NCBI GenBank assembly: GCA_020137815.1
Contig: CM035352.1
Coordinates: 992,001-1,056,000, forward strand
Direction of reading: 5' to 3'
DNA length: 64,000 nucleotides
Source: Hormiphora californensis
Taxonomy: Eukaryota > Animalia > Ctenophora
Part shown: positions 6,225 through 38,438 of the stretch, in pieces
Layout: every line of letters starts with the position of its first letter
How positions within the stretch are numbered: the stretch's first letter is position 1
Made by a program: the position numbers and the translations under genes
The notes under the pieces: model-generated
Database searches by the model: none
What the model was told of the DNA's origin: nothing
What the model saw: only the letters and a program-made list of their open reading frames with translations

Positions 6225-16206
<9,982 letters not shown>

Positions 16207-21119: not shown

Positions 21120-21291
21120 AAGGTCAGATTGGAACTGAAATCCGATCAACTTACCAGATTGATTTGAGTAAGATGTGGAGAAGAAACCAGGGAACGAAAC
21201 CAATCCTGAGAACTCATTTGATACCTGTGAAATAAAGATTATTAGAAAGGGCCTCCTATCATACAGCATTTGAAATATTAAATTTGAAATG

Positions 21292-21355
21292 TCAGGTTAT
21301 GTAGCCAAAGAATTATCATCAGATGAAGTCTGATTCGTCATCTTGATATCATCAC
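21292..21355 (-). ncRNA. Box C/D snoRNA, snR75-like (25S Gm2288), duplicate copy
   Basis: C GTGATGA; guide AGATGACGA before D' CAGA; second element TTTGGCTAC; D CTGA. Confidence 0.8.
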
Positions 21356-21440
21356 ACTAAACGAACAGACTGACAAAAGGACAAACTAAAACCTACCAAT
21401 TAAGTTAGGAAAATAGAGTTGAGCTTCGCCGGTCGGGCAA

Positions 21441-22520: not shown

Positions 22521-23225
22521 AGCGGGACAAACACACACAGACGAACCAAAGAGACTGGTAACAATGAGCTGAGAGCTAAACGGACAGATAAATTTAACCA
22601 GATTTAATAAATTACTAAAATCGAATAGAAAAAGGCGAATAAGTTAGTTAAAAATACGGTAGTTACAAAACACCACCACATATACACACACACTCACACA
22701 CACACACTCACACACACACACACACACAACTCACACTCAGACTCACACTCACACTTATACCCCAACATCCAAAAAATAAAGACATACACAAAACACAAAT
22801 AAGTTAAGTTAAATAAGTTAATTAAAAAATGGTCATCACACAAGAGAACACAAAGGTGCACACACAAACGGACACAGCATACCTAGACTACTTGGAAACA
22901 GTAAACCATGTTTAGCACACATCGTTAACATAAAAATAGTAAGATTGTCATTGATAAATACGTACTCATCATCACTTTCGAAGTGTTCATTTACAGTCTG
23001 CAGAAATAACTGCACTTTCCGCCGTTTTCGTAACGGTACTCGTTTCTTGTAACTGTTTTCTCCTGGCCCATACTCGGCCAATTCTCTACTACCCTCAGAC
23101 TCTACCCCATATCTCGGTTGCCAAGATCCTACTAACCCATACACCCACCACACACAAACGAACAAGAATAATCACTCAAAAAACCCTAGCTCTGAACAAA
23201 TATGTGAAGGACATCTCTCCTAACT

Positions 23226-23900
23226 CAGGATGGTGGTGAAATAGGACGGATGATGGAGGATAGGAACAGGATGATGGAGGATAGGATGGATGGTGAAGGA
23301 TGGATAGTGGAGGATAGGAAAGATGGTGGGGGATTGGACGGATGATGGAGGATAGGACATATGGTGGAGCAGGGGCGGTGCGCGGCTTTCACCCGCTCTG
23401 GTCAAAATGCGGCCGAAACATTTTTAACTCGCGCGTTCCGTCGAAATACCCAATGCGGACGATCCGCATTGGCTATTTTGACGTAGCGCGCCGATCAAAA
23501 AATACTGCGACGGCAAAAAAACCTGTGTGGCGCGCGGATTTCACTAAAAATCTCATTTGAAACATCAAATTTGGAGAAAAATTGACCCTTTTCCTTGAAT
23601 TTTTTCTTTTTCTCTCCGTGATCCAAAGTAAAAATGCGGACGCGTCCGCATCGTCCGCATGGCAGAGCCGCCCCTGTGGTGGAGGATAGGACGGGTGGTG
23701 GAAAATGGGACGGATGATGGAGGATAGGACGGATGGTCGAGGATAGGACGAATGGTGGAGGATGGGACAGATGGTGGAGGATATTACAGATGGTGGATGA
23801 TAGGACGGATGATGGAGGAGGAGGATAGGACGGATGGTGGATGGGACGGATGGTGGAGGATAGGACGGATGGTGGAGGATAGGACGAATGGTGGTCGGTG
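23226..23900. repeat. Degenerate 19-bp minisatellite (GGATGGTGGAGGATAGGAC)
   Basis: Direct reading; interrupted by a MITE. Confidence 0.9.
23370..23676. mobile_element. hAT-type MITE
   Basis: TIR CAGGGGCGG...CCGCCCCTG; 8-bp TSD TGGTGGAG on both sides. Confidence 0.9.
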
Positions 23901-24657
23901 GAGGGTGTCACCCCCCCCCTTATAATCGCGCCCGTCAAAAACACGAGGAAGCGAAATTTTAAAGTGCGTTTCAAACGACTTGACCTGAGATTCCTGGAAA
24001 TTCAGGATTTCCCCTTTGTAAATACACGCGCAATGCGCCAAATTCCAAGAATTACGGGTCAAGTCGCTTGAAACGGACTTTAAAATTTGCGATTTATATT
24101 TATTTTTAACCGTCGCGCGGCGCACCTCTACTGGTATGGCTCCGCGCGACGTACAAAAGCATCGTTCTTTGATTAAATCGCGCGTTACTGTTATCGGAAC
24201 AAATGGGCCCGGTAATGTCAAACCAGTCCACTCGTTCCGAAAATCTGTCTCACGCCGCCGACCCAATCTGAGCGCACTGTCAATGGCCGCCGCCATACAG
24301 CCAAAAATGGGGTCTTGCGGAGCCAAACAAGTCCACACTTGGCATTTGAAGCCGAATTACACAAGACCGGACTGCCAAGTTGGGTGAATATTGCCAGAAC
24401 TGTACACCGGTAGACAAGTCAAAACAACCAATTAACGAACAAAATGAATAAAAGTCTGCAATTAACAAACTAAAGCACTGAAAATCTGAGTCCATAATAA
24501 TACATCCTCAAATGAATAACTCCTCTATGGCAGACGAGTTACTCCAGGATTCATCGATCTTTATCAGCAGGTTTCCAGAATCTTTTAGAACTCCTGAAAC
24601 AAGGGGGTTAGAAATTTAGGAAACAAATTATGTAGTCTGTGCTGAATTCTAGAAAAA

Positions 24658-24756
24658 TTCAGAGTAACTATAACAAATGTTATTCCTCAGTAAGTTTAGC
24701 CGGATACAATAACTGTATCACAACCAAATAGGAACAGATATAGGATATCATCAGAA
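24658..24756 (-). ncRNA. C/D snoRNA snR63/SNORD46-like (25S Am2256)
   Basis: + strand tcag-AGTAACTAtaac; D+5 = A2256. Confidence 0.85.
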
Positions 24757-24928
24757 TAGTCAGATCTGTTACTGAAAACAGATTCACTTACCAGATTGAT
24801 CCGAGTAAGATGTGGAGAAGAAATTAAGGAACGAAACCAATCCTGAGAACACATTTGATACCTGTGAGATAACGATTATTAGAAAGGGCCTATTGTAACA
24901 CAGCATTTGAAATATCAACTTTGAAATG

Positions 24929-24992
24929 TCAGGTTATGTAGCCAAAGAATTATCATCAGATGAAGTCTGATTCGTCATCTTGATATCATCAC
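24929..24992 (-). ncRNA. C/D snoRNA snR75-like (25S Gm2288)
   Basis: + strand TCGTCATCT and GTAGCCAAA match 28S helix 70/71. Confidence 0.85.
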
Positions 24993-25159
24993 ACTAACAA
25001 ACAGACTGACAGACAAACTAAAACCTACCAATTAAGTTAGGTAAATAGAGTTGAGCTTCGCCGGTCGGGCCATATTGGCAGTTACATCAGAACCTGAGTA
25101 AATAAATGTTAGAAAAGCCTTGTCGATCAAAAAATAACTTGATAAGGATCTAAATAATT

Positions 25160-25221
25160 TCAGATTGTAGCCATTAAGTTATCACCAGATTAAAGTCTGA
25201 TTCGTCATCTTGGATCATCAT
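25160..25221 (-). ncRNA. C/D snoRNA snR75-like paralogue
   Basis: Same guide TCTGATTCGTCATCT and GTAGCCA element. Confidence 0.8.
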
Positions 25222-25406
25222 TATAAACAAGTGATTCAGAAGGATAGAGACAATACTTGAACTCACATTTCAAGGCCAAGGGACAGTCAGGGGACAAGCT
25301 CATCCGGAAATACAATCCATCACCGTGATCAGTTGGGTAACCTGGAAAGAAGCCATATTTTAAACCGAGCTAATCAACAATGATAAAACTATTAATTGGT
25401 TTGTAA

Positions 25407-25475
25407 TCAGAAGGAAGGCAGCACCGTAATTCAGTCATCTTAGTTCAGTGTGACAATTTGGTGTTACTTCATCAG
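25407..25475 (-). ncRNA. C/D snoRNA snR52-like (18S Am420)
   Basis: tcag-AAGGAAGGCAGCA; D+5 = A420. Confidence 0.9.
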
Positions 25476-25624
25476 GTTAATAGAAAACCCCGGATATCAA
25501 AGAAATTAACTGACCTCCTGGATACTGAGTAGACAGAAACTCCTATGATGGATTCTATGGGAAATAGACAGGTGGTGAAAAGAGAGTTAGCAGGACCAGG
25601 TTGTGGTTATGTTGAAACGTTGTT

Positions 25625-25676
25625 TCAGAGAATTGTAGTTAACAAACATGGAAGATTCTTTACAATTTATCATCAG
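25625..25676 (-). ncRNA. C/D snoRNA candidate, target uncertain
   Basis: Boxes C and D present; guide region GAATTGTAGT may match 28S domain I. Confidence 0.55.
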
Positions 25677-25780
25677 GCTATTGGACAGTTGCCAACCAGT
25701 TGAGAACAAGACAAACCTGTGAGGAAACAAGGTGTTAGATTCTCTTTCGGAAAGAGAACGGTGTTACTGTTTCAATAAGA

Positions 25781-25848
25781 TCAGATTTAAAAAGCTCTTG
25801 TTAGGTCTCACCGCTGAAAGCTCAACAACAAATGGGGTTGATCATCAG
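25781..25848 (-). ncRNA. C/D snoRNA snR47/SNORD36A-like (18S Am619)
   Basis: tcag-atTTAAAAAGCTC; D+5 = A619. Confidence 0.88.
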
Positions 25849-26005
25849 AGTAAATAACGGTGGTAGGATGCGCCTGATAACGTACCTGATTGATAGAAGA
25901 GTATCCAGTGGAATTCCAGTCGATATATCGCAACTATCCTGAAGTGATGACAACGGTTAGGAAAGCAAAAAACAACAATCAGCTAAGATAGATAGATTAA
26001 ATATA

Positions 26006-26065
26006 TCAGGTTTAGGGATATGTTGTCTTCAACCAACAGTCCAAGAGAGCTGGGTGTGTCATCAC
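26006..26065 (-). ncRNA. C/D snoRNA targeting the 25S PTC (Am2946 or Cm2948; snR71/snR69-like)
   Basis: GAGCTGGGT next to box C; D' is ambiguous. Confidence 0.75.
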
Positions 26066-26221
26066 ATAAAATAACTAGCAACTGGCTGGATGGGGCAACT
26101 CACCAAGATCAAGAAGAGAGTTCGTCTGTGCCAAGTCTGCATGTTGGTATCTGAGGAAAGAAGACAAATGTTAGGGCTCCATTGTAATTGTTAAACGAGA
26201 AATTATTGTTAAGAATGTATT

Positions 26222-26286
26222 TCAGTCTTAGATGTTCTGGAAAGAGGTCTACAGTGTACATCAGAGTGGTGCATGTGTATCATCAT
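26222..26286 (-). ncRNA. Double-guide C/D snoRNA: D' guide snR40/SNORD32A-like (18S Gm1271), D guide 18S CUUAGAUGUUCUGG
   Basis: tcag-aGTGGTGCATG (D'+5 = G1271); tcag-tCTTAGATGTTCTGG. Confidence 0.9.
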
Positions 26287-26451
26287 TTTAGAAATTAGGG
26301 AACACAAGACTGACAGTTCGAACTTACCGATTAAAAGGAAGATGCAAGTGTTTCGAAACATCATTCCAAGCCAGCTGGTTATTTGAACACCTGAGGAGAA
26401 GGCTGGTTAGATATCGAAAACATCAGATAATAATAGGTAACAGGTAATCAA

Positions 26452-26646
26452 GGTTGTCATTTGCATGGTTTATCCCCGTGGTAACAGACACGTAGTATCA
26501 TCCACGAGACGCAAGGAATATGCAATGGAGACGTGAATCTCTTGGTGTGCAACAGTATGGAGGACAATACCATATATGGGTATAATCCAGACACCATCGG
26601 GCTGCCCTGATGGTGGCAAAACCTCCAGGGAACACCCAGTCGCAGT
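26452..26646 (-). ncRNA. SNORA73: U17/snR30 (SNORA73) H/ACA pre-rRNA processing snoRNA
   Basis: Minus strand TGCATATTCCT...AAACCATGCA...ACA+3 nt matches the conserved m1/m2 motifs in the 3' hairpin. The 5' part has CCCTGGAGGT similarity; length ~195 nt. Confidence 0.88.
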
Positions 26647-26809
26647 AATTAATTAACTAATTAGGATGCTTACCTTGCCAATTATCTGGTAGATCCTGTC
26701 AGTGAAGTCAGTTGAAGTGCTCAGTGTATCAAGCTGTTGAAGGGAAACAGTGTTAGAAATACAAAAGATTGAAGGCAAGACTGTATTAACACTGATAAAT
26801 AAAATCAAA

Positions 26810-26880
26810 TTCAGACATCCAAGGAAGTAAAACTTCATGAATTATCAGTGGAAACTGCGATGGAGGAAATTTCATCAGAA
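26810..26880 (-). ncRNA. SNORD14: U14 snoRNA (18S Cm414 guide plus domain A)
   Basis: Minus strand TGATGA...TCGCAGTTTCCAC (domain A)...CTTCCTTGGATGTCTGA (domain B and box D). Confidence 0.95.
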
Positions 26881-27341
26881 AAGGGGGGACAGAAGGTCAA
26901 GCTCTCTAGTGTAACTTACCAGGAAACAAAAAGATTTGCATCAGAATTAGAGTGCCAAGCTATACCTCCTGAGAATGCAAGAAAAGGCGTTAAAATTTAG
27001 TAAGTAAGCTCACAAAATAAAAATCAAAGCTTAGTAAGCGTTCATCTCTCATAATCTTCTCTCAGATACCCTCACGCTAGCCTTAAAGTTGGTATAAATA
27101 TTGATAGATAATTATAGGTTATATTGCCACCATACAAAAGCCCGAAGGCAAGAAAAAGAAATAAAATTCTACTATAGCAGTATATGACTAACGTGAGAGA
27201 TCGGCAGGTCAGTTTAAATCATTACGCTTGGTAAATTGGTAAGTTTCATACCGGGTTTTGGATCTTACCTGAAACTAAGGGACATATCGGTTAGAATGGG
27301 TCAAGAGTTAGGTTTTGTAATGCCAACAATATTAACACATT

Positions 27342-27406
27342 TCAGTCTTAGATGTTCTGGAAAGAGGTCTACAGTGTACATCAGAGTGGTGCATGTGTAT
27401 CATCAT
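27342..27406 (-). ncRNA. Identical copy of the 26222-26286 snoRNA (18S Gm1271)
   Basis: Sequence identity. Confidence 0.9.
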
Positions 27407-27588
27407 TTTAGAAATAGGGGCAGCCAGGGCAGGGGAGAGATTACACACCTTGAGAAGGATTGAAGTGATCCGATCAGGTTCAGGGGCTTAGTTTCGGATT
27501 CTCCTTTGCTGTAATCGTCTGAACGGGAGGTAAATTGGTTAGGCAAGTCGAAAACAATTGAAATTCACAGGTGATTTGTAGAAAAGTA

Positions 27589-27649
27589 TCAGCAAAGATT
27601 ATAAGTTGTCAACTCAGAAGGGTCAGACGGTAATTCCAATAAACATCAC
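27589..27649 (-). ncRNA. C/D snoRNA snR77/SNORD65-like (18S Um578)
   Basis: tcag-aCGGTAATTCCA (D'+5 = U578); extra CAAAGATTA element. Confidence 0.88.
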
Positions 27650-27835
27650 GTCAAAATAAAGAGAATGAGATATGCTAGCATCTTACCCAGTGGTAGTATT
27701 GCGGGTGAAGACTTCAGAAATGAAGAATAGTCCTCACAAGAGGTGGAAACAGTTCCTATTATAACCTGAAAACAAGGCACTGTTTAGCAACAAATAAATG
27801 GAAATGTGAGCAACTAGGCTTTTAATTGCTTTGGA

Positions 27836-27897
27836 TCAGCAAAGATTATATGTTGTCAACTCAGAATAAGTCAGACGGTAATTCCAATAAACATCAC
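27836..27897 (-). ncRNA. snR77-like paralogue (18S Um578)
   Basis: Near-identical to 27589-27649. Confidence 0.88.
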
Positions 27898-28060
27898 GTC
27901 AAATGTTGGGGGACCGGGTTAAATAGTTCAAGCTTTTTAATTACCTCGATACTGTTATCATCGTACTGTCGCATTGAGGAAGTGAGAGGGAACACCTGAA
28001 AAGGAGAAACAGTGTTATACAGAGTGTCACCTGTACACAAGACAACAGAACTATTAAAGT

Positions 28061-28125
28061 TCAGTCTAAAAGATGTTAAAATCACTGGCAGTCAGAAGTA
28101 GTGACAATGAGTATTTGATCATCAA
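28061..28125 (-). ncRNA. C/D snoRNA SNORD70-like (human 18S Am512)
   Basis: tcag-aaGTAGTGACAAT; D'+5 = A of GUAG. Confidence 0.82.
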
Positions 28126-28306
28126 AACAATAAGATATAGGATTAGAAAGAGCCATTACTTACCAGGAACATAGTGTTATAGAAATTCCAGGTCAGGCTC
28201 AATTTTCAACACCAACTTTAAACAAATCAATCATCGAACTGAAAAGGAAGGGAAATATTAGTACCCAAATTGATCCAGTTGTCACGGTGGCTTAGGACAT
28301 AATGAA

Positions 28307-28365
28307 TCAGAGGGTTATGTTGTGATCACTGACAGTCATGAGTTGTGTCAAAAGTTAAACATCAC
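28307..28365 (-). ncRNA. C/D snoRNA candidate, possibly 28S GUGUCAGAAAAGUUA region
   Basis: D, C', D' and C (GTGATGT) present at the standard intron position; imperfect guide. Confidence 0.55.
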
Positions 28366-28517
28366 ATTATAATTCTGGGATGAATTGGAGATGGAACTCA
28401 CCAAGAACGAGAAGAACAAGTCTATCCAATTGTATCCCAGCACCAACTGATCTGTAGTGAGAGGAAGTGTTACAAAGAGGAAACCTTGAACGAAATAGAG
28501 GAGTTGTTTAGCTTATT

Positions 28518-28599
28518 TCAGAAGGAACAATTATAGTAAACAGTTAGTGAGTGAATAAATTCATCCACCATTTATATAGGGCAAGTCATTTTTCATCAT
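28518..28599 (-). ncRNA. Double-guide C/D snoRNA: 18S Am541 (snR41/SNORD62-like) plus AGGGCAAGUC (human Gm601 region)
   Basis: tcag-aAGGAACAATT (D+5 = A541); AGGGCAAGTC beside box C. Confidence 0.87.
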
Positions 28600-28800
28600 A
28601 GTACAGGAAAGTAAAGGAGCAGTATATTAACCCTATAACTTACCAACACTTTGTCGAAAAGATTCCCTCGTGACATCATCCATCGGTAAATCGGGGTCCG
28701 GTAAATCTTCAGATCTTTACAAGATGGATACCTGTAAGGAAAGAACTTGGTTAATGACTAAGGTACAATTACACTAAAAGCTTGGCTGATGACCATCATT

Positions 28801-28882
28801 TCAGAAGGAACAATTATAGTAAACAGTTAGTGAGTGAATAAATCCACACACCATTTATATAGGGCAAGTCATTTTTCATCAT
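28801..28882 (-). ncRNA. Paralogue of 28518-28599
   Basis: Near identity. Confidence 0.87.
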
Positions 28883-29059
28883 AGTACAGGAAAGTGAAGG
28901 TTTGTGTTACTTAACGTACCAACTAATTCAGGAGGATGATGTTCCTTCGTTTAGTCCCAGAGAGAGAAAGAGAACTTGAGAGATATCACCTATTAAGGAT
29001 ACAACGTTAATATCAACCAGGACAGTAATTATACAGTTATTAGGAGGATGTTAAGGGGA

Positions 29060-29118
29060 TCAGTAAGGTTAAGGGTATCTTCACTTTGGGTCAGAAACAC
29101 GGACCTTAGTTTCATCAG
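29060..29118 (-). ncRNA. SNORD18: U18/snR18 (25S Am649)
   Basis: tcag-AAACACGGACC; D'+5 = A649. Confidence 0.92.
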
Positions 29119-29297
29119 GTTAAAACGCAGGTAAAAAGATGGAGAAGAAAAGCTCACCTTGTTTAGTAGTGAAAAGAGTAGAGATGGTCTTGTTGAAGAC
29201 AGATTGAACCAGTAACTGAACCAGAGCCCTGAAGGAAATAGCTGGTCAGAACAGTGTCACCTACTCAAATTAGGAAACAGGTCTAGTTGAACAGGTA

Positions 29298-29438
29298 TCA
29301 GAGGTAAAATTGACATCATATGGTGACGTGAGGGTTGAGGTGGACAAAGGTAGATTGGGATGGCAAAAAACTTGCCATCCTAATCAGGAGTCCAACCTCT
29401 CCTCCCGCCCCCTCAATCCAAATGCCAGATGTCATCAA
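29298..29438 (-). ncRNA. Long-hairpin C/D snoRNA, snR13/SNORD15-like (25S A2280/2281)
   Basis: Box C, guide GGCATTTGG, D' TTGA, ~90-nt internal stem-loop, C', D. Confidence 0.75.
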
Positions 29439-29612
29439 TTATAGGGCAAATCTTCTAACTAGCATGTCTGTCAACTTACCAGTAATGGAAGAGTGTTCAA
29501 GGAAAGGGGAGTCAAACTGTATCACATCTTTATCATGGAAACCTGGGAAAAAGGGAGGGGTGTCAGGAACCTGAATAATATGAAGACTAACAGAGAATGG
29601 TAGATTTAAATA

Positions 29613-29672
29613 TCAGGTTTAGGGATATGTTGTCTTCAACCAACAGTCCAAGAGAGCTGGGTGTGTCATCAC
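29613..29672 (-). ncRNA. Identical copy of the 26006-26065 snoRNA
   Basis: Sequence identity. Confidence 0.75.
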
Positions 29673-29829
29673 ATAAAATAACAAGCAACAGGATTGGATG
29701 GGGCAACTTACCGGTTAATTGGATTCCTCAACAATCAGATCTCCAGTTATCAACAATTAACCTGAAAATATTGGCATGATTAATTATCGTTGTTGGGGCG
29801 TTAATTAATTAAGATTTGTCAGTGAAGAG

Positions 29830-29893
29830 TCAGATACGAGGAATTCTATATGTCATCCTTGTGGGATCAGAACAGGTCTGTAGAAATCATCAC
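29830..29893 (-). ncRNA. Double-guide C/D snoRNA: 18S Gm1572 (snR57) plus Gm1428 (snR56/U25)
   Basis: tcag-atACGAGGAATTC and tcag-AACAGGTCTGT; both obey D+5. Confidence 0.92.
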
Positions 29894-30082
29894 GCTGCAA
29901 CACACCCCAATATTCGGGATATGGAATGTGTTCGAATGTGGTAGGGTTGCTTACCTTACACTAGGAAGATGTTGAGGCCTCTGCCAGTCATTGATCAAAC
30001 TTTCCAACACTACTACCTAGAATGAAGGAACATGTTAGTCCTGATTTCGTTATCAATAAACAATAAAATGTAGCAGTAAAGA

Positions 30083-30176
30083 TCAGATTCGGGAATTGTC
30101 TTCACTAGACCAGAGGGTGTTTTGTTGGGCTGGCAGGCCCCACCACACTGGTATACGACGCAAATTACGGCATCAT
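30083..30176 (-). ncRNA. SNORD16: U16/snR87 (18S Am436)
   Basis: Minus strand ATGATGCCGTAATTTGCGTC resembles the U16 5' end; internal hairpin. Confidence 0.88.
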
Positions 30177-30387
30177 GGTAAGGGGAAGAGGGCAGGTTTG
30201 AGAGAATGGTATAACTTACCAGGTATAGAAAACAGGGAGCCAGTTTGAAGAAATCCAACAATAACAATATCAGCTGATGTTGAGGACTGCCAGTTATTGA
30301 CCAACTTTCTAACACAACTACCTGGAATGGAGGAACATGTTAGGATGGGTTTCGTTAGCAACAAACTACAAATTGTAGTGGTAAATA

Positions 30388-30669
30388 TCAGACACGGCAA
30401 TGTGGCTGTCTTCACTAGACCAGAGGGTTGGTTGATGGGGCCTGCCAGCTAGGCCAGTTTCAACCCCCGTTAAGTATATCAAGCATAGAAATTCAGCGAA
30501 AATCAGGTTTCAAATGCGTACACAAGCAACTAAAAATTGGAAAGCTGTTTTCGTGTACATGGCCAGTGTACATTTCAGAATGTCGATGCTTGATATACTT
30601 TTCGGGGGTCGAAACTGGCCTAGCTGACAGGTCCCACCACACTGGTATAAGACGGAAATTTGGCATCAT
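30388..30669 (-). pseudogene. U16 paralogue interrupted by a MITE, with a mutated guide
   Basis: Colinear with 30083-30176 apart from a 169-bp insertion; guide GACGGAAATTT versus GACGCAAATTAC. Confidence 0.75.
30452..30620. mobile_element. TA-flanked MITE with ~35-bp TIRs
   Basis: GGCCAGTTTCAACCCCCG..AAGTATATCAAGCAT / ATGCTTGATATACTT..CGGGGGTCGAAACTGGCC. Confidence 0.85.
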
Positions 30670-30818
30670 AATAAGGGAGGCGTGAGAGAATGGTTTAACT
30701 TACCAGTTATCGAACAGGGAGCCAGTTTGAAGAAATCCAACAAAAACAACAGCTGAGGGGAAGATTTGTGTTAGTGAAATCCAGGATAGAAATAATCCTT
30801 GCATGTTTGGTTAGTGAC

Positions 30819-30885
30819 TCAGGATAGCTATATTTTGGTTTGTCGTTCAGCTTAGTCTTCTGAACAGGTCTGTTGTGTTCATCAT
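30819..30885 (-). ncRNA. C/D snoRNA U25/snR56-like (18S Gm1428)
   Basis: tctg-AACAGGTCTGT beside box C. Confidence 0.8.
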
Positions 30886-31046
30886 AGAAAGAAGAGAGTA
30901 GGAGTTTGTGTGTGCTAACTTACCAACAACATTAGAAGAAAGGAGAACTAGATTCAAGCAGACTTGTATATCTTGATCTGAAGTAAAGGTGAAATGTAAG
31001 ATCCAGCTATTGACTTGTAGCTAACTTGATCATGAGTTTGTTGATT

Positions 31047-31107
31047 TCAGAATCAGCGGAAAATGTGGAAATAATCATCGTCAGAGCTAAGTTGATTCGT
31101 TCATCAT
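31047..31107 (-). ncRNA. C/D snoRNA complementary to 28S AAUCAGCGG (near the snR190 site)
   Basis: All four boxes present; tcag-AATCAGCGG. Confidence 0.75.
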
Positions 31108-31306
31108 GTAAACGAGGTCAGAAGGGTCAAGGAGTTGTGTGATAACTTACCAAGTGTGTGTGTGCGGATTAGGAGAAGGTTCAGATGGGGGGACTAGCTC
31201 AAATGGACATAGACAATGGATAGCGGGAGAGCACGAGAATCCTGGAAGTAATTGTAAGTTAGACTGATGTCATGTGATATCGATTAATTGAATTCAATTT
31301 GTAAAT

Positions 31307-31364
31307 TCAGATTAGAATTGGCATCATTTCTGTCAGCCGAAAGATGGTTAAAATTGATCATCAG
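31307..31364 (-). ncRNA. C/D snoRNA snR39/snR59-like (25S Am807)
   Basis: tcag-CCGAAAGATGGT; D'+5 = A807. Confidence 0.9.
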
Positions 31365-31534
31365 AAGTTAGAAACACTATCAACTAGGAAACCGTGCTGC
31401 TTACCTAATTAACAGAGTCTTGATTCCAAATATCAAAGAAAGGAGAAATGACAACAGTTGAGTTCTGAAAGAAGGATGATGGTTAGATTCAGATTGAAGA
31501 ATGCGATCTGTAGTGTGATAATGAAGGTGTCCCT

Positions 31535-31598
31535 TCAGGTGAAGAAATTGTCATCAGAGCATGAAGCTCTAGCATTAATGTCATAGTGTGATCATCAC
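31535..31598 (-). ncRNA. C/D snoRNA snR47/SNORD36C-like (25S Am2220)
   Basis: tcag-GTGAAGAAATT; D+5 = A2220. Confidence 0.9.
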
Positions 31599-31761
31599 AA
31601 GGGTGTAACAACTCACAAGAGTGGGGATTATTTAGCGGCTAACTTACCAGGATCGAAGTAGAGCTGTGATGACGGGATATAGCAGTAGCAGAGCAACCTG
31701 AAGTAAAAACATTATTAGCGGGTGGACAATAGGATTCATTTGTGTAAGGTGTTGTATTGTA

Positions 31762-31811
31762 TCAGGAAAGAGTGTCATCATTTAAAATAAGACCCGAAAG
31801 ATGAACATCAT
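31762..31811 (-). ncRNA. C/D snoRNA snR39B/SNORD2-like (25S Gm805)
   Basis: taag-ACCCGAAAGATG; D'+5 = G805. Confidence 0.87.
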
Positions 31812-31979
31812 GTTAATAAAAACTATGAGAACTTAGTGAGCTGCTTACCTTTTGAAATTGAACGGAGACATAACTTCTCTGCACCGATGTGGATGTTGGT
31901 GATACAAAACTCGATACCTGATGGAGAAACTGTTAGAATTGAAATGAGATCATGTCATAGTTGTAGTTACAGTATAGGA

Positions 31980-32034
31980 TCAGATTACAGTCTCGATCAC
32001 GGTGATTCAGACAATGTAGGTGTAAAGTAATCAT
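31980..32034 (-). ncRNA. C/D snoRNA snR62/SNORD34-like (25S Um1888)
   Basis: tcag-ACAATGTAGGT; degenerate box C. Confidence 0.75.
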
Positions 32035-32201
32035 GTCTTTAGAGCTAGTCACTATCACTGCGGAAAATAATTACCTTATTGCCTTGCTGGGTCGAAGAAG
32101 AAGAGGATGATTAGAAACTGTCAACCAAACTTGAACCTGATAAAAGAAGCTTTGTTAATAAACAAGAAACAATCTTGTAACACACGGGTTATAAAATTAA
32201 A

Positions 32202-32272
32202 TTCAGACATCCAAGGAAGTAAAACTTCATGAATTATCAGTGGAAACTGCGATGGAGGAAATTTCATCAGAA
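32202..32272 (-). ncRNA. SNORD14: U14 snoRNA, second identical copy
   Basis: Identical to 26810-26880. Confidence 0.95.
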
Positions 32273-32435
32273 AAGAAGAGATTCAAATCAGGGGTGCTTT
32301 GCTTACCGTGACAATAGAAAATCCACAACATCAGTCTGAACTATCCTGGAACATTCTCGAATCAACATCTGCAAGAGGAGAGACTGGTTAGATAGTGTGA
32401 ATCACCAATTAAATGTTAATTATCCTATTGACACG

Positions 32436-32498
32436 TCAGTTTATGGGTGGTAGGAGGGTGAAAGTCCTCACAATCGAGTAGGCGTACTCTCTCATCAT
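32436..32498 (-). ncRNA. C/D snoRNA complementary to 18S UAUGGGUGGU (~1260 region)
   Basis: tcag-ttTATGGGTGGT; box C ATGATGA. Confidence 0.78.
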
Positions 32499-32649
32499 AC
32501 GAAATAATATTAAAATGAAAAGGGATCTGACTTACCATTTAAATGTTGAGATACAGTTGTCTGTTGTCAGCTTTCCTCTTCCTGTAAGGATTGAGTCTGG
32601 TTAGGGAACATTTCAGATAATTGAATTATCAAGAGATCAAGTGTTACTT

Positions 32650-32712
32650 TCAGCTGTTACCAAATGGGTATCCCCACGGTTTTGTAAGACAGGGATAACT
32701 TGTGTTCATCAT
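32650..32712 (-). ncRNA. C/D snoRNA snR38/SNORD1-like (25S Gm2815)
   Basis: taag-ACAGGGATAACT; D'+5 = G2815. Confidence 0.9.
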
Positions 32713-32886
32713 TTAAATTAAAGACACTTTTACTATCCTAACCCACGTACCAATTTTAGGAAGAGAGCTGAGAACGAACTTGCAATTTCAGGTCTACACG
32801 GGGGAGGCTGATAGAACCTGAAGGAAAGAAGAGACTGTTAGTAAGTGTGTATCTATTAACTTAATTTGGCAAGTCTTACTCAAGTA

Positions 32887-32948
32887 TCAGAAACGGCGGG
32901 AAATGAAAAGATTTCAGTGACCGAAGCCTCGTATATTTCATTCGTCAT
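32887..32948 (-). ncRNA. C/D snoRNA complementary to 28S AAACGGCGGGA (helix 68/69)
   Basis: tcag-AAACGGCGGGA; box C ATGACGA. Confidence 0.8.
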
Positions 32949-33108
32949 AAATTAAGAGGAATATTCAGGACAGGCAGATGGTGTAGACTTACATCGATTC
33001 GAAAGTCCAGCATTTAGTGAGACATCATGTGCAACTTGATCTGAGAAGAGAAGGAACGTGTTAGATTGCTATTTGAATGAGAAGCAATTTGTAGAAATAG
33101 GGATTATA

Positions 33109-33237
33109 AACTGTGCCTGATTGGATTGAAACCGAAGGATTGGAAACACCTTGATCACACTAAACCAGGTAGTGGTTGCTTTAGTTACGCTGACGGCCGA
33201 CATGCCATTGAGTAGCATGGCGGTGCTTCTGGCAACA
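33109..33237 (-). ncRNA. Box H/ACA snoRNA candidate
   Basis: Hairpin, hinge AAAGCA (ANANNA), hairpin CCTGGTT...AATCAGG, then ACA+3 nt. Confidence 0.6.
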
Positions 33238-33400
33238 AGGTAAGGATGACAAAGGAGAAAGTTACCTATTGAAGAGTAACAGATGTAGCTGAGGCAGGGA
33301 ACCAGAGTTTGTTGTGTAATCAATTGTATCACTGAAGGAAGAGCAGAATGTTAGACACATGATAGAAGCAAGAGTTTCAGAATCTATTAACTGATATATA

Positions 33401-33460
33401 TCAGACTCATTAAATCAGTTAATTTGCCTTCATGGTAAATAAGGATTAAGAGATCATCCT
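33401..33460 (-). ncRNA. C/D snoRNA snR51/SNORD57-like (18S Am100)
   Basis: tcag-aCTCATTAAATCAGTTA; D+5 = A100. Confidence 0.88.
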
Positions 33461-33609
33461 GTATTAGGGTATTCAATTAGAAAAGAAATTAAACTTACCA
33501 TAGCGCGAGGAGTTTTTGCTGAGTAGGCTGATTCTTGAGAACCTGAGAATAGGAATTTGTGTTATTAGGGCTATTAGGTGAACGTAGAAAGATGTCAATT
33601 TTGTTTGTA

Positions 33610-33676
33610 TCAGAACGTGTTGCTGGCATCAATAATATCAGACGGCAATTCCTATCAAAGATTTGTAACTCATCAC
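33610..33676 (-). ncRNA. C/D snoRNA, divergent snR77-like
   Basis: tcag-aCGGcAATTCC plus CAAAGATT element; four boxes. Confidence 0.7.
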
Positions 33677-33832
33677 CGAAATAGAGAATGGGACAGGCCA
33701 GGTGTTAACATACCTTGATCAGAGACAGGGGCGAGTTTTTGGTGGTTCCAGGAATTCCCTTCTCCTGTGAATAAAGATTTGGTTAGCAGTGTAATGGGAT
33801 TCAGTTGGCATTTAATTTGAAACTTAATGTGA

Positions 33833-33902
33833 TCAGATAGGAGCGAAAGAATTGCTTGAGTTCTACAGTGCATAGTATTCAGTTGAACTATGGTCTCATC
33901 AT
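33833..33902 (-). ncRNA. snR60/SNORD80-like double guide (25S Gm908 and Am817)
   Basis: tcag-ATAGGaGCGAAAGA and tcag-tTGAACTATG; both obey D+5. Confidence 0.93.
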
Positions 33903-34066
33903 AAAAATATTCCCACCATAATACAGAATTCAAATTCTTACCTTGTAGCAATTGAATTAGTAAAGGAGTAGTCAAAGAGAAGTAGAAACACAGGGTATAT
34001 TGCCTGAAAAGGGGAAGGGTATTAGCAACTGGTTAGCCATCTATCACGATTTAATTCAAATAAGAA

Positions 34067-34136
34067 TCAGATAGGAGCGAAAGAATTGCTTGAGTTCTAC
34101 AGTGCATAGTATTCAGTTGAACTATGGTCTCATCAG
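34067..34136 (-). ncRNA. snR60-like, second copy
   Basis: Identical core. Confidence 0.93.
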
Positions 34137-34533
34137 TGTAGAATTACTGAGAGCTAATTCAAAGAATTTCTCACCTGATATGAGCACCAACAGATCCAGT
34201 CAAGCTATCTCATCATCAACACCAGTGGTATATCTTCACCACCTGAGGGGGTTGAATTTGGAAGGGGTGCACGGGGCGTAATGACATGGGAGCCAGCACA
34301 CACGTTAAACAACACTACGTTACTGTTCCTACGCTTTGTTACTAAGGCAATGATAAACACTGCCCCGTCTTCGAGTGGCAGGGAGAGAAGCAAGGCTGGG
34401 TAACTTACCATGTTGAGACTGAGATTGATGGCATAGAGGTCGAAAAGGGAACCACGCACTGCAGAACTGAGGCGAAAGGACGGTTAGAAATCTAGTCAAT
34501 TTATGGCAAAATACTAGTTGAAGGTGTTAAATA

Positions 34534-34588
34534 TCAGAAAGATGTATCTCCACTAAGATTCAGATATATGCTTGTCTAGGTTCATCAT
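34534..34588 (-). ncRNA. U27/snR74-like (18S Am28)
   Basis: tcag-atATATGCTTGTCT; D'+5 = A28. Confidence 0.9.
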
Positions 34589-34774
34589 TTTAACAGGCAG
34601 GGGATTATAATAAGACTTAACTAGCTTACCTTCAAGAAGAAGTGAAGAAGAAAGGAAAGATCACCATATATATGTACAGTCGAACCACGATTCACCATAA
34701 GAGTACGCCTGGAGTTGGATAGTGGTTAGATTTGGGTATTCAAAAAGCTAGAAATAGCAAGATCTGGTATAACA

Positions 34775-34830
34775 TCAGAACAGGAATTAATCACAGGGAT
34801 TCATTACAGGTCTCCAAAAAGTATCATCAC
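34775..34830 (-). ncRNA. C/D snoRNA complementary to 28S CAGGUCUCCAA
   Basis: 11-nt match beside box C; four boxes. Confidence 0.8.
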
Positions 34831-35250
34831 TTGAAATATTAGCCGACTAGGGATCTAGACACTAAGAAACTTACATCAAATTGACAAAGAGATGATCCTC
34901 TACATAGCGGATAGTAGTAAATAGAGTTATTATCATATCACCTGATGGGAGGAAAGAAGGGTGTAGTGACCGTAATGACTGACTAACTAAATAGAGGCAG
35001 GCCAGTAAAGTGAAGGTCACGATAATCTCGCCCCATTTCTACACCGCAATGGCCTGGAAAATAGGGCCAAGGTAGCTCTAACTGGGGCATTACAGGGATT
35101 TATTTAGGAGTAGTACTTACCATCGTTTCAAGACGAAGTGGGACGGTTAGTAAACACAACTCTGTACAATTCGGATATCTCTGAAAGAAAGGGAGTGTGT
35201 TAGAAGGGGTCAAAAGCCAATGAGTATGGTACTTAATGCTGCTTAAGGGT

Positions 35251-35309
35251 TCAGAATAGCGTATATGGACGTAGACATGGTGGAATTACTTGCGACATTG
35301 TGTCCTCAT
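35251..35309 (-). ncRNA. U54-like (human 18S Gm644)
   Basis: tcag-AATAGCGTATAT; D+5 = G. Confidence 0.87.
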
Positions 35310-35441
35310 AACCCTTAACAATGTTGGAAGATAGGGGTTAGGTACTTACAGGGGCTGTAGGTGATCCAGAGGGTGAGGCATCACATCAGATAATTGATCC
35401 ATTCTCTTGTGTTGAGAACCAGCTCTGTAGAAGGGGAAAGG

Positions 35442-35575
35442 GGGTGTTAGGCTTTGCAGACGCTTACAAACTACAAAAAGCTAGCAAGTCTTAATGGGCC
35501 TATGATGTTCTATTCCACAAGTAAATAAGCACGGGAGACGCAACAGTCTGCACCGTGCACTCAACTATGTGGTAC
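35442..35575 (-). ncRNA. Box H/ACA snoRNA candidate in the first intron
   Basis: Hairpin CCACA...TGTGG, hinge AGAACA, hairpin TAGGC...GCCTA, then ACA; the ACA overlaps the branch-point region. Confidence 0.5.
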
Positions 35576-35769
35576 TAGCTAACTACTAAGTTAACCCTAT
35601 CTAAGTTATTTGGATTGAAATTATTATATTGACTTACCAATATCAAGCAAGAGTTTGGCGATACCAGGTGGTGTTTGGCAGACGATCAACAGATTTCAAG
35701 GAACAACGATGAGAACTGAATTGAGAGAGGGAGAGTGAGTTGGGATAGAGAGCGTGAGAGCTCACGCAG

Positions 35770-35970
35770 GGGAAATTGTGGACAACTTTTGAGCTGCGTG
35801 AGTGTGCTTTCCGAATGCTGCGTCGTTGTGGTTTACCAACTAGCGCGCGGGCACTGTGCTAGTCCTTTGTGCGCAGTTGTGGACAACTTTTGAGAGGGAA
35901 AATGTGGACAACTTTTGAAGTAGGGAAATTGTGGACAATATTTGAAGTAGGGAAATTGTGGACAATATTT
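35770..35970 (-). promoter_or_regulatory. Putative promoter of the snoRNA host with 5 copies of (GGAAAT)TGTGGACAA
   Basis: Repeats near 35771, 35876, 35898, 35923 and 35951, just upstream of the first exon. Confidence 0.5.
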
Positions 35971-36595
35971 GAGGATGGGTGGGAGATGGGGTGATGGTCG
36001 GGAAAATGGGAATATCAGGTTAATACGGTTAACTTACTTTAACGTTTAACTCTAGGTAGATAAATACACAGGATTTAGGAGGCGAATAGTTGGACAAGCT
36101 GGGGTATAGGTAGCTGGAAACTAACATTTACCAATTTAACCCATATAACGTTACCGGGTAGGATAGTTAGAATATTGTTAGAATTCGTCTGATCTGCTAA
36201 CTATAACTGAGAGAAGCTGGGTCTATCTGTTAATATTAAAGTGGTTAAGTTAAAATATATTGTCATCATTTAACAAAATCGTTATTTAATAAAGTTAAAT
36301 ACTTTATTTTATGGATTTATCTCAAATTAAAACAGCTAATTAAAATTGTTGTAAATTAAATATTGTGTACAGAAATAAAGTGTAAGTGATGACACAAGAA
36401 AATAGTTTTAAAACGCTGTTTTACAGTCTATAATAATACTTGCACACTCGCACACAGACAGACACACGGACAGCCTCTAGCTGTGGCAATTATTTAGTAA
36501 GATAGTGTTCAAATAAACGTAAATAACACACCGGGATATATTTTAAGGTGATATGAGAGGGAGGGTGGTAATCAATATCACCCACCTTGTCTTGT

Positions 36596-38438
36596 TTAGT
36601 ATGGTTTATAGTTTGCTGAACTTCTCGAGCTGTGAGATGAGCTATAGCTAGCTTTCTGTGCAGCGCCGTACGTGCTGGCTGATTGACCACCGTATTGTCC
36701 CGCCTGCTGCAGAGAGAGAGGTGTGATACAAAATACTTTTAGGGTTTAGGACAGCTGATACAAATAAAACTACAGAAGACAAATCAAAGCTCATTCTATT
36801 ATAGCTCAAGGACAAATCAAAACAATTATCTAACCTGTGGGTAGTGAGATGCGGGTGGGGGAGGGTAGGAAGCAGCTGGGGGAGGGTAACCAGGGTAGGC
36901 AGGATAGGATGGTGCTGCGGCGGCAGGTGGATATCCGGGGTAGCTAGGTGGATATCCGGGGTAACCAGGAGGCGCAGCTGCAGCTGCTCCACCAGTCGAA
37001 CCAGCGGCAGCAGGGGCAGTGGCGGGAGGAGCTGGGGAGGTAGTTATATAGTGGTTAGATGGGCAGTGAAATAGTAGCCAGTCAATGGAAGAGAAGCAGT
37101 CAAACTTGCCAGTTAACAGCACAAAACCTCAGAGCGATATTTGAGCCACACACAACACGAGACAATATCACAAGACTCTGATTTCAAAAGACACACTCAC
37201 CTCCGTATCCGGGGTAGTGAGGTGGATATCCAGGGGGCGGGTAGTGTGGAGGTCCGTATGCAGCAGGGGGTCCATATCCAGGATGGGGTGGATATCCACC
37301 TTGCTGAGGGTGCTGGTTGTACACACTCGGGTTGCCACTGTTGTTCTGGTGGTGGTTGTTGTTTTGTTTGTTGTTGCCAGAGTTGTTATCTGCGTTTGAG
37401 GCTTTCTTGCACTCTATCTTCTTGCCTTTAAACTCGATGTGCTGAGGGATGGGAAGAGATGGTTAGATTTGGGTTAGCACTGCCTCTAGTGTGGCCTCTC
37501 TGGCCCTTTTAATTAAAATGAAGGGTTTCTGAGAAGTATGCTTGCTCGAACCTCTCTTACTTCGTCCGAACATATCATCTCACCTTCAATATGATCAGCT
37601 TGTCCACAGAGTCATGATTCTCAAAGGTAACAAACCCGAACCCTCGACCCCTCCCCGTCGCCTGATCCCTCTTGAACTGGCACTGAGACACAGGACCGTA
37701 AGTCTCAAAGAATCTCTTGATCTCACCCTCATCAGTTTCTGGCAGACCCCCAACAAAGATCTTGGTACACTTGTCCTGGGACTGGTCCTTTGGTACTGCC
37801 CTCTTGACATCCACCTGGTTGAGGGGGAGGGGTGAGGAACATAAAGAAATGAAAAAGGGAATGATTGAGATAAAGGAAAGGGCGGGAGAAAGGGGGGATA
37901 GTGAGAAAGATGAAGGGGGCTATTCGGGATAGAAACAATTTCAGGTAGTTTCAGAGAAATGGGGATAAAACGATGAATCTTTGAATGTGAAATGATCTCA
38001 CTTACATCTTTTCCGTTGACATGGTGAGGTTTCTCTGCAATTGTTTTATCGACAGCTTCAGAGTCCTTGAAAGTTATGAAAGCGAACCCTTTGCTAATCT
38101 TGGTCTCCCTATTCCGAACATGTACCAACTCCTGAGAGATGGGGGGAGGGACATATTTAACAAAAACATGGACGGGGTTGGGTATTCGAAGGGGGAGGGA
38201 CATGACTTGCCTTGTTCGAACCTCTCGAATGGGTTTGAAAAAAAAACAAGACAGGACAGCAGCTACGCTCTAGCACATTGGATGATTCATGATACAGCTA
38301 TTAACATCTCCCCAGTTCTCTCACCTCTATCTCTCCGAACTGTGAGAAGTGATCTCTGAATTGTTCATCCTGTGTATCAGGTTTAACTCCACCAATAAAG
38401 ATCTTCCGCAGAATCAACTCTCTGTCCTGGTTAGCCAT
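36596..38438 (-). CDS. Two-RRM hnRNP A/B/D (DAZAP1/Musashi-related) protein with a Pro/Tyr/Gly-rich tail
   Basis: KIFIGG...SKGFAFITF; VDVKRAVP; KIFVGGL...GRGFGFVTF; C-terminus ANYKPY*. Confidence 0.9.

Follow-up and report, generated by a model that had tools for sequence, protein, structure and literature searches.

The non-coding host genes GAS5 and SNHG1 carry about 8–10 small nucleolar RNAs (snoRNAs), and the snoRNA clusters of Neurospora are small. Drosophila Uhg4 carries seven snoRNAs (PMC9710044), and SNHG14 comprises 29 SNORD116 and 48 SNORD115 introns (PMC11608373). The Neurospora clusters I–V are UHG-like fungal loci, i.e., non-coding hosts with only short open reading frames (ORFs) and intronic C/D snoRNAs (PMC2780460), while the fission-yeast host SPNCRNA.659 comprises five snoRNA introns (bioRxiv 10.1101/226894). 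Here we analyzed a window of 64,000 nucleotides (nt) of the ctenophore Hormiphora californensis (assembly GCA_020137815.1, contig CM035352.1, positions 992,001–1,056,000; positions below refer to this window unless another contig is named). The minus strand between 24,440 and 35,720 is very probably a gene devoted to hosting snoRNAs, which codes for no protein, belongs to the UHG/GAS5 type but is enlarged to 45 introns, and uses its exons as disposable spacers.

A reading of the minus strand at positions 23,000–36,000, combined with a listing of donor and acceptor motifs, revealed an unbroken chain of 45 GT...AG introns, and because this chain is unbroken the locus is likely to give a single transcript. 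Intron lengths range from 151 to 382 nt (median 171), those of the internal exons with non-zero length from 39 to 102 nt (median about 62). Twenty donors read GTAAGT, six GTAAGC, and the remainder are close variants. In 27 of the 45 introns, CTAAC is found no more than 45 nt from the acceptor; most others have related branch-like motifs. All acceptors are YAG save that of intron 29, which was set at 28452; a candidate at 28485 was dropped in its favor, based on the rule that box D lies 62–77 nt from the 3' splice site. Each intron holds a single RNA, with two of these introns hinging on zero-length exons (Table 1). The payload comprises 39 box C/D snoRNAs, U17/snR30, and two RNAs without family assignment; of the three remaining RNAs, two are clear H/ACA snoRNAs and one is H/ACA-like. 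In all C/D units box D is an exact CUGA and box C deviates by at most one mismatch, while terminal stems are mostly short (1–7 bp), which is common among intronic snoRNAs. Eight of the C/D snoRNAs are internal duplicates, thus about 31 of them are distinct, as are about 37 RNAs of the entire payload. A preliminary description of this stretch had proposed about 45 introns in an 11-kb minus-strand period of exon, donor, box C, box D, branch site, and AG, with 39 C/D snoRNAs, U17/snR30, two H/ACA candidates, and three unassigned structured introns. All of these elements lie where it had placed them, all 45 introns could be rebuilt, and its count equals our tally (39+1+2+3).

The cassettes follow a narrow geometry. 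Among the 39 C/D cassettes, the median distance from donor to box C is 39 nt (range 34–61) and that from the end of box D to the 3' splice site 67 nt (range 62–77, interquartile range 66–69.5). This agrees with the positional requirement relative to the 3' splice site that is already known for intron-encoded C/D snoRNAs (PMC2780460). U17 and the RNAs of introns 11 and 35 obey a similar spacing, their 3' ends being 64–74 nt from their own 3' splice sites. In contrast to all other payloads (about 62–77 nt), the clear H/ACA RNAs of introns 1 and 3 leave only about 20 nt to the 3' splice site, so that the branch motif overlaps the ACA box; in intron 1 (35425–35450) the shared sequence is CUAACA, and 34942–34966 is the intron 3 counterpart. 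Splice-site quality and geometry are uniform across the entire array. An automatic cassette detector recovered 38 units in the 11.3-kb locus versus 6 on the entire 64-kb plus strand; a cassette-like match at 17,795 appears to be due to chance.

This regularity bears on the question whether splicing is involved at all. Outside animals, many snoRNAs come from tandem clusters that mature without splicing, and splicing of the present locus is read from sequence. One might thus envision a non-intronic polycistronic cluster of the plant, trypanosome, or budding-yeast type, which is cut by endonucleases and in which GT and AG are incidental. However, in 45 of 45 units a consensus donor precedes the payload by a fixed distance, 45 of 45 have a branch-like motif, pyrimidine tract, and YAG (for intron 29 see above) at a fixed distance downstream, and the periodicity is missing from the opposite strand and the flanks. 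Such a cluster is thus very improbable.

Cassette distances also led to two putative zero-length exons. At 27269/27268 and 25717/25716, 3' and 5' splice-site motifs are juxtaposed, with correct cassette distances on either side. Following the distance rule, two long 'introns' of 480 and 331 nt would each hold two payloads, split at AG/GT. In fission yeast, recursive splicing at a zero-length exon has been documented for the snoRNA61 host intron (bioRxiv 10.1101/226894). The AG/GT junctions found here are probably recursive splice sites as well.

For identification of guide targets, the genome's own 18S ribosomal RNA (rRNA; 1,801 nt, compared to 1,800 nt in yeast) and a composite 28S rRNA built from broken ribosomal DNA (rDNA) served as reference. 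The 18S numbering is within 0–3 nt of yeast, while the composite 28S is offset by +168 to +173 in its 5' half and by +204 to +207 in its 3' half, calibrated on sites whose snoRNA family was named by Rfam. The host strand contains 34 12-mers with Watson-Crick complementarity to rRNA, versus none on the opposite strand, 6 against reversed rRNA, and 0–2 in flanks of equal length. We further considered a guide as anchored if it begins 1–3 nt upstream of a CTGA box, with the target opposite position 5 (D+5). Eighteen anchored guides of at least 12 nt were found, compared to 0 for reversed rRNA, 0 for the plus strand, 0–1 in the flanks, and 0–1 for scrambled boxes; at least 11 nt are reached by 28 anchored guides versus 0–5 in the controls. 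Unanchored complementarity that includes G-U pairs was dropped, as 179 matches versus 169 for reversed rRNA do not discriminate.

The D+5 positions of the guides correspond to 20 methylation sites of yeast firmly and to two more tentatively. In 18S rRNA these are A28, A99, C414, A420, A540, U577 (addressed by three snoRNAs), A618, G1271, G1429, and G1575, equivalent to yeast Am28, Am100, Cm414, Am420, Am541, Um578, Am619, Gm1271, Gm1428, and Gm1572 in the site table used (PMC5344495). In the composite 28S rRNA, positions 817, 978, 980, 990, 1081, 2092, 2425, 2461, 2493, and 3022 correspond to Am649, Gm805, Am807, Am817, Gm908, Um1888, Am2220, Am2256, Gm2288, and Gm2815 of yeast 25S rRNA (PMC5344495). 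The two tentative cases are 18S A436 (11 bp, degenerate D' box) and the Gm2791/2793 pair. The preliminary description had listed 21 known sites, and all of them were matched on the genome's own rRNA, A436 with the degenerate D' box and 25S A817 by 9 bp plus the Rfam family call. Overall, its observation is confirmed and its interpretation supported in every part tested. Other well-supported guides address positions that are unmethylated in yeast, namely G594 (U54 family), A464, A1445 (15 nt), and U1262 in 18S rRNA and 2451, 2594, and 144 in the composite 28S rRNA. In total, the locus covers 10–11 of the 18 yeast sites in 18S and about 10–11 of the 37 in 25S rRNA. Thus the statement that it carries a large part of the guide set holds for 18S, but less so for 25S rRNA. 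Comparison of the orphan guides with U6, U2, and U5 from the same genome delivered nothing above control.

The rDNA that underlies the reference is broken in this assembly. One 18S-5.8S unit, followed by the 5' two-thirds of the 28S gene, is found on the plus strand of contig C13, while the rDNA is otherwise truncated or inverted in the assembly. The sole assembled 3' part is an inverted partial 28S gene on the minus strand of C13 with an insertion of about 1,985 nt (about 2,743,911–2,745,895). This insertion is flanked by ...GTAACTATGAC on one side and TAGCCAAATGCC on the other, exactly at the classical target site of R2 retrotransposons, of which 10 nt are missing. Both junction flanks of the insertion are present on a fragment of contig C12.

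Rfam family evidence is in line with the guide analysis. At gathering thresholds, one family was detected in the whole window, snR60/Z15 at 33,825–33,910. With E-values up to 10, 55 matches were obtained in the region, which besides a few noise matches are nearly all snoRNA families on the minus strand; the sole snoRNA-family match off this strand is a weak U8 (E 1.4). The families comprise SNORA73/U17 (E 8e-9), SNORD57, two snR60/Z15, two SNORD14/U14, SNORD27, SNORD18, SNORD2, and U54, and further snoR38, snR52/U83, two snR75-like, two Me18S-Gm1358, and Me28S-Am982. Rfam had been suggested as a check in the preliminary description, and it delivered snR60/Z15 with a score above the gathering threshold, SNORD57 less than 1 bit short of its own, and U17 with an E-value of 1.3e-10. 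For U17 in intron 37, the score of 46.5 bits is below the gathering score of 74, while the alignment spans model positions 1–219, with UGCAUAUUCCU and AAACCAUGCA...ACA aligned at high posterior probability. The motifs AUAUUCCUA and AAACCAU are the conserved 18S-binding elements in the 3' hairpin of U17. Both U14 copies reach 33.3 bits versus a gathering score of 64, but combine the 13-nt D guide to C414 with a perfect 10-nt match at about position 84 of 18S rRNA, upstream of D'.

The remaining payloads were approached by folding. The minimum-energy folds of the RNAs in introns 1 and 3 consist of hairpin, ANANNA hinge, hairpin, and an ACA 3 nt from the end, and in the intron 3 RNA the 3' pocket offers bipartite complementarity of 9+4 nt around U2416 of the large subunit (LSU; composite numbering). 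The intron 11 RNA comprises the same elements in a less clean form. When sub-windows of the H/ACA and family-less introns were searched against Rfam, only noise-level matches were found, such as a weak SNORA52 for intron 1 (E 2.1) and SNORD97 for intron 35 (20 bits, E 0.31); neither of the two clear H/ACA RNAs has an Rfam family assignment.

The spliced exons contain no ORF beyond chance. The spliced model of 2,878 nt has 137 stops over three frames, and with 45 introns the longest stop-to-stop frame measures 89 amino acids (aa) versus 103 ± 23 in shuffles, the longest ATG-initiated ORF 78 aa versus 77 ± 24. The preliminary description had likewise seen no credible ORF and had named a long conserved ORF in the spliced exons as evidence to the contrary; none above shuffle expectation was found.

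Besides coding potential, a partial duplicate of the host's 3' end located 3.6 kb downstream (Table 1; a second aligned piece extends to 20,483) allows the selected parts of the locus to be recognized. Between duplicate and host, the two snoRNA bodies are identical at 64 of 64 and 95 of 96 positions, whereas exons share 85.5%, the remaining intron sequence 81.4%, and downstream DNA 71% identity. Taken together, 159 of 160 positions in snoRNA bodies stand against 406 of 485 (84%) in exons and intron flanks (Fisher p 1e-9). Similarly, internal snoRNA duplicates are 94–100% identical and their similarity ends at the snoRNA borders. Selection is confined to the snoRNA bodies, and thus the snoRNAs are the selected product, while the exons evolve like spacer. 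The tandem duplicate (20483–21438) begins inside an exon, right after a CTTTGTAACA minisatellite (21,470–21,640), and runs about 360 nt past the terminal exon. Its two snoRNAs are intact and may be expressed via read-through or alternative 3' splicing.

These data also speak to a protein-coding gene, or its untranslated region, with snoRNAs residing in the introns by happenstance. Many animal snoRNAs are indeed found in ribosomal-protein and translation-factor genes, and upstream of the host, on the same strand, an RRM-domain exon (hnRNP-like) and a KOW-motif exon, which reads like ribosomal protein L6 (eL6), lie at 37595–38203 and 39542–39907. However, the nearest of these coding exons is about 1.9 kb away, beyond promoter-like repeats. 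Stops amount to 40, 44, and 53 per frame in our first model with 43 introns, where internal exon lengths are spread evenly over the phases (15/14/13), and the exons diverge as quickly as the intron flanks in the paralogous copy. We regard such a gene as scarcely credible.

The promoter-like repeats are four copies of TTGTCCACAATTTCCC and represent a candidate promoter element. This 16-nt motif occurs nowhere else in the 110-Mb genome save for single matches with one mismatch; a role as genome-wide promoter motif was consequently rejected, as it is confined to the host locus. A run of CTCTCCCTCTCTC at about 35714–35726 is a candidate 5'-terminal oligopyrimidine (5'TOP) start, a vertebrate feature of UHG/GAS5-class hosts. 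Inside the presumed first exon, TCTCTCAATTCAG at about 35,708 forms a good acceptor-like motif and could be a spliced-leader acceptor.

The present locus is not alone. At least two further multi-snoRNA hosts of the same cassette design were found on contigs C1 and C6 (Table 1). Guides of the C1 host address the equivalents of C663, A876, and C1437, while those of the C6 host are directed to G1126 of 18S rRNA and to the counterparts of U2729 and C2959 of 25S rRNA. With about 13 and about 12 cassettes, respectively, both are smaller than the locus on CM035352.1. The unusually large and diverse super-host of the preliminary description is therefore not the only multi-snoRNA host of this genome.

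Hosts of this smaller size raise the possibility of a row of two or more shorter adjacent units, e.g., with 10–15 introns each, in place of one with 45. The end-to-end linkage of the exons is derived from sequence and not from RNA data, and ctenophore mRNAs are often leader-trans-spliced (PMC8527503), so that internal acceptors could in principle take a leader. However, the segments between introns measure at most 102 nt, with two of 0 nt, which leaves no space for internal terminators or promoters. Furthermore, the repeated promoter-like motif is found upstream of exon 1 only, and neither splice-site quality nor cassette geometry changes along the array. A row of shorter hosts is therefore improbable.

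Several points weigh against one large non-coding host as the most probable reading. We infer its transcription as one unit, its splicing, the maturation of the snoRNAs and their accumulation, and also the rRNA methylations, and both the 5' end and the poly(A) site are predicted. The zero-length exons could alternatively be single long introns with two snoRNAs, or weak alternative donors might be used. Most Rfam scores are under the gathering thresholds, and about ten C/D snoRNAs lack a convincing target in rRNA, U2, U5, or U6. Equivalence to yeast sites was derived from coordinate offsets and family names, not from alignment to yeast rRNA, while part of the 28S reference is a composite of fragments, since the assembled rDNA is broken, and 10 nt in it are given as N. 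Finally, the only listed RNA run of the same species gave one partial match of 33 nt over 24,300–30,299. This run has about zero words in common with the locus and consequently neither supports nor refutes the host. The match itself (27201–27233, two mismatches) links the intron 35 RNA to a 140-nt contig of very high depth (625) with different flanks, which may represent either a repeat or an abundant small RNA related to it.

If the locus is indeed such a host, the following scenario could be envisioned. RNA polymerase II would transcribe about 11.3 kb of the minus strand as a series of cassettes, in each of which the snoRNA follows the 5' splice site after about 39 nt and is itself followed by about 67 nt, with CTAAC branch site and pyrimidine tract, up to the AG. 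Splicing would free each intron, the box C/D or H/ACA motifs would recruit the core proteins of the small nucleolar ribonucleoproteins, and after debranching, exonucleases would shorten the intron to the protected snoRNA. Where the exon shrank to zero, an AG/GT recursive site would leave each neighboring snoRNA its own branch point and 3' splice site. The products would be 39 box C/D guides (about 31 distinct) that direct 2'-O-methylation of both 18S and 28S rRNA, two copies of U14 together with U17/snR30 as processing snoRNAs, two to three H/ACA guides, and two RNAs without family. A single promoter would thus co-express a large share of the rRNA guide set and would co-regulate much of the 18S guides, including the essential processing snoRNAs U14 and U17.

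One might go further and speculate that ctenophores, the probable sister group to the rest of the animals, concentrate most rRNA guides in few giant non-coding genes of near-identical cassettes (39 nt, snoRNA, 67 nt), that no known host of diverse snoRNAs in any organism is larger than the present locus, and that its AG/GT junctions are obligatory recursive splice sites, through which snoRNP assembly coupled to splicing would still handle a single snoRNA at each branch point. As a whole we consider this wider picture possible, yet rather doubtful. If true, splicing- and position-dependent snoRNA biogenesis would have been fully established at the base of the animal tree.

Independently of this speculation, the 39/67-nt geometry, which hardly varies among 39 cassettes, and the two putative zero-length exons offer a natural experiment on the constraints that intron layout imposes on snoRNA maturation. 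In the literature searched, including the Hormiphora genome paper (PMC8527503), we came across neither an account of ctenophore snoRNAs nor one of a diverse host of comparable size, in line with the preliminary description, to which none was known either. With respect to this literature, about 37 distinct snoRNAs and a predicted methylation map of ctenophore rRNA represent the first snoRNA set for the phylum. An 11-kb gene of this kind is left blank by protein-centered annotation.

Table 1. Features of the snoRNA host locus, its surroundings, and related hosts (window coordinates; contig coordinates for the C1 and C6 hosts; yeast equivalents of targets in brackets).
Feature	Position	Strand	Details and evidence
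Whole predicted non-coding host gene	24440–35720	-	46 exon positions (two zero-length), 45 introns; ends predicted; splice-site chain
Candidate promoter element	35770–35965	-	Four copies of TTGTCCACAATTTCCC upstream of exon 1; sequence
Intron 1 (35425–35637), H/ACA snoRNA	35442–35572	-	Hairpin, AUAGAA hinge, hairpin, ACA + 3 nt; fold z -2.35
Intron 2, U54-like C/D	35251–35309	-	7–8 bp terminal stem; D guide 12 nt to 18S G594; Rfam 27.3 bits, E 0.002
Intron 3 (34942–35120), H/ACA snoRNA	34959–35089	-	Hinge AGAUUA, ACA tail; fold
Intron 4, C/D without firm target	34775–34830	-	Boxes
Intron 5, SNORD27-like C/D	34534–34588	-	D' guide 12 nt to 18S A28
Intron 6, payload without family	34243–34408	-	ACAGUA hinge-like motif, ACA box absent; fold z -0.01
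Intron 7, C/D snR60/Z15	34067–34136	-	D to LSU G1081 (25S G908); D' to LSU A990 (A817); Rfam 39.7 bits
Intron 8, C/D snR60/Z15, second copy	33833–33902	-	Rfam 44.6 bits, above gathering score 41; 100% identical to intron 7 over 70 nt
Intron 9, C/D	33610–33676	-	D' to 18S U577 (U578), weaker guide
Intron 10, SNORD57-like C/D	33401–33460	-	D guide 17 nt to 18S A99 (A100); Rfam 46.2 bits vs. gathering score 47
Intron 11, H/ACA-like RNA	33109–33232	-	Hairpin, AAAGCA, hairpin, ACAGUU; ACA about 71 nt from 3' splice site
Intron 12, C/D	32887–32948	-	D guide 12 nt to LSU G2451; not a yeast site
Intron 13, snoR38-like C/D	32650–32712	-	D' box CUUA; 12-nt guide to LSU G3022 (G2815)
Intron 14, C/D	32436–32498	-	D guide to 18S U1262
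Intron 15, U14 (SNORD14)	32203–32270	-	13-nt D guide to 18S C414; domain-A-like element vs. 18S about position 84
Intron 16, C/D	31980–32034	-	D' guide 11 nt to LSU U2092 (U1888)
Intron 17, SNORD2-like C/D	31762–31811	-	D' box CUUA; guide to LSU G978 (G805)
Intron 18, C/D	31535–31598	-	D guide 11 nt to LSU A2425 (A2220)
Intron 19, Me28S-Am982-like C/D	31307–31364	-	D' guide 12 nt to LSU A980 (A807)
Intron 20, C/D	31047–31107	-	D guide to LSU A2594; not a yeast site
Intron 21, C/D	30819–30885	-	D' box CAGA; 11-nt guide to 18S G1429
Intron 22 (382 nt), paralogue of intron 23 C/D	30389–30669	-	Broken by inverted-repeat element at about 30450–30622
Intron 23, 94-nt C/D	30083–30176	-	11-bp match puts 18S A436 at D'+5; D' box degenerate, tentative
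Intron 24, C/D	29830–29893	-	D' to 18S G1429 (G1428); D to 18S G1575 (G1572)
Intron 25, orphan C/D	29613–29672	-	Paralogue of intron 39 snoRNA
Intron 26, long C/D (141 nt)	29298–29438	-	Internal hairpin; weak target 18S G905
Intron 27, U18-like C/D	29060–29118	-	D' guide 11 nt to LSU A817 (A649)
Intron 28, C/D	28801–28882	-	D guide to 18S A540 (A541)
Intron 29 (28452–28643), paralogue of intron 28 C/D	28518–28599	-	Same target as intron 28
Intron 30, C/D	28307–28365	-	D' guide to LSU 3000–3003, probably G2791/G2793 pair; tentative
Intron 31, C/D	28061–28125	-	D' guide 13 nt to 18S A464; not a yeast site
Intron 32, C/D	27836–27897	-	D' guide to 18S U577 (U578)
Intron 33, paralogue of intron 32 C/D	27589–27649	-	Same target as intron 32
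Intron 34 (27269–27448), Me18S-Gm1358-like C/D	27342–27406	-	D' to 18S G1271; 15-nt D guide to 18S A1445
Putative zero-length exon	27268–27269	-	Acceptor ...TTTCAG abutting donor GTAAGA; sequence and cassette distances on both sides
Intron 35 (26969–27268), RNA of about 190 nt without family	27036–27231	-	6-bp terminal stem, C/D-like motifs; 3' end about 67–74 nt from 3' splice site
Intron 36, second U14 copy	26811–26878	-	98.8% identical to intron 15 U14
Intron 37 (26391–26673), U17/snR30 (SNORA73)	26452–26643	-	AUAUUCCU and AAACCAU elements, ACA box; Rfam alignment
Intron 38, copy of intron 34 C/D (G1271/A1445)	26222–26286	-	Paralogy and guides
Intron 39, copy of intron 25 orphan C/D	26006–26065	-	Paralogy
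Intron 40 (25717–25885), C/D	25781–25848	-	D guide to 18S A618 (A619)
Second putative zero-length exon	25716–25717	-	...CTCACAG abutting GTTTGT; sequence and cassette distances on both sides
Intron 41 (25555–25716), C/D	25625–25676	-	D guide 11 nt to LSU U144
Intron 42, snR52/U83-like C/D	25407–25475	-	D guide 13 nt to 18S A420
Intron 43, snR75-like C/D	25160–25221	-	D' box CAGA; 9 bp put LSU G2493 (G2288) at +5; manual pairing, composite LSU
Intron 44, second snR75-like C/D	24929–24992	-	Rfam and boxes
Intron 45, 96-nt C/D	24659–24754	-	D guide 12 nt to LSU A2461 (A2256)
Partial duplicate of host 3' end	20636–21438	-	Part of exon 44, introns 44 and 45 with snoRNAs, last exon, sequence beyond; self-alignment
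C1 host	about 1,452,987–1,457,469 (contig C1)	-	About 13 cassettes; 99%-identical U17 copy; U18 paralogue
C6 host	about 6,563,956–6,572,289 (contig C6)	+	About 12 cassettes

Two repeats in the window were noticed in addition. At 30450–30622, an inverted-repeat element of about 170 nt, which resembles a miniature inverted-repeat transposable element, interrupts the C/D snoRNA of intron 22; further inverted pairs of its arms, spaced by about 380 nt, are present on contigs C13, C10, and C4. Intron 23 holds the uninterrupted paralogue of this snoRNA, while the guides of the two differ. Outside the host, a long tandem array with a 66-bp period and about 99% identity was found at 14000–15403, visible as a ladder in self-comparison.

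If compared to known systems, the mechanism is that of textbook UHG/GAS5 hosts, and the advance lies in scale, phylogenetic position, and architecture, not in principle. Like GAS5, SNHG1/UHG, and Drosophila Uhg, the locus carries one snoRNA per intron with a set spacing to the downstream 3' splice site, its exons are non-coding and poorly conserved, and its payloads are canonical rRNA guides. What is unusual, and sets it apart from these genes, is the number of 45 payload introns with about 37 distinct RNAs in regular cassettes, the inclusion of both U14 and U17, the two putative zero-length exons, and the phylogenetic position. Neurospora clusters I–V and the fission-yeast hosts SPNCRNA.659 and SPNCRNA.445 are non-coding as well and harbor intronic C/D snoRNAs at a similar distance to the 3' splice site (PMC2780460). 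However, these hosts are fungal, not animal, and do not concentrate the guide set to such a degree. With SNHG14 and other imprinted mammalian arrays, the predicted ctenophore host shares dozens of consecutive snoRNA introns in a long non-coding transcript. In contrast, the SNHG14 arrays are tandem repeats of two orphan snoRNAs that have no known rRNA targets, whereas the payloads of our host are mostly different from each other and most of them have canonical targets. Compared to any host gene found in the literature searched, it comprises about three times as many different guides. Thus a non-coding host of mostly different canonical guides can reach 45 introns, and in this respect the locus bridges GAS5/Uhg and the SNHG14 arrays.

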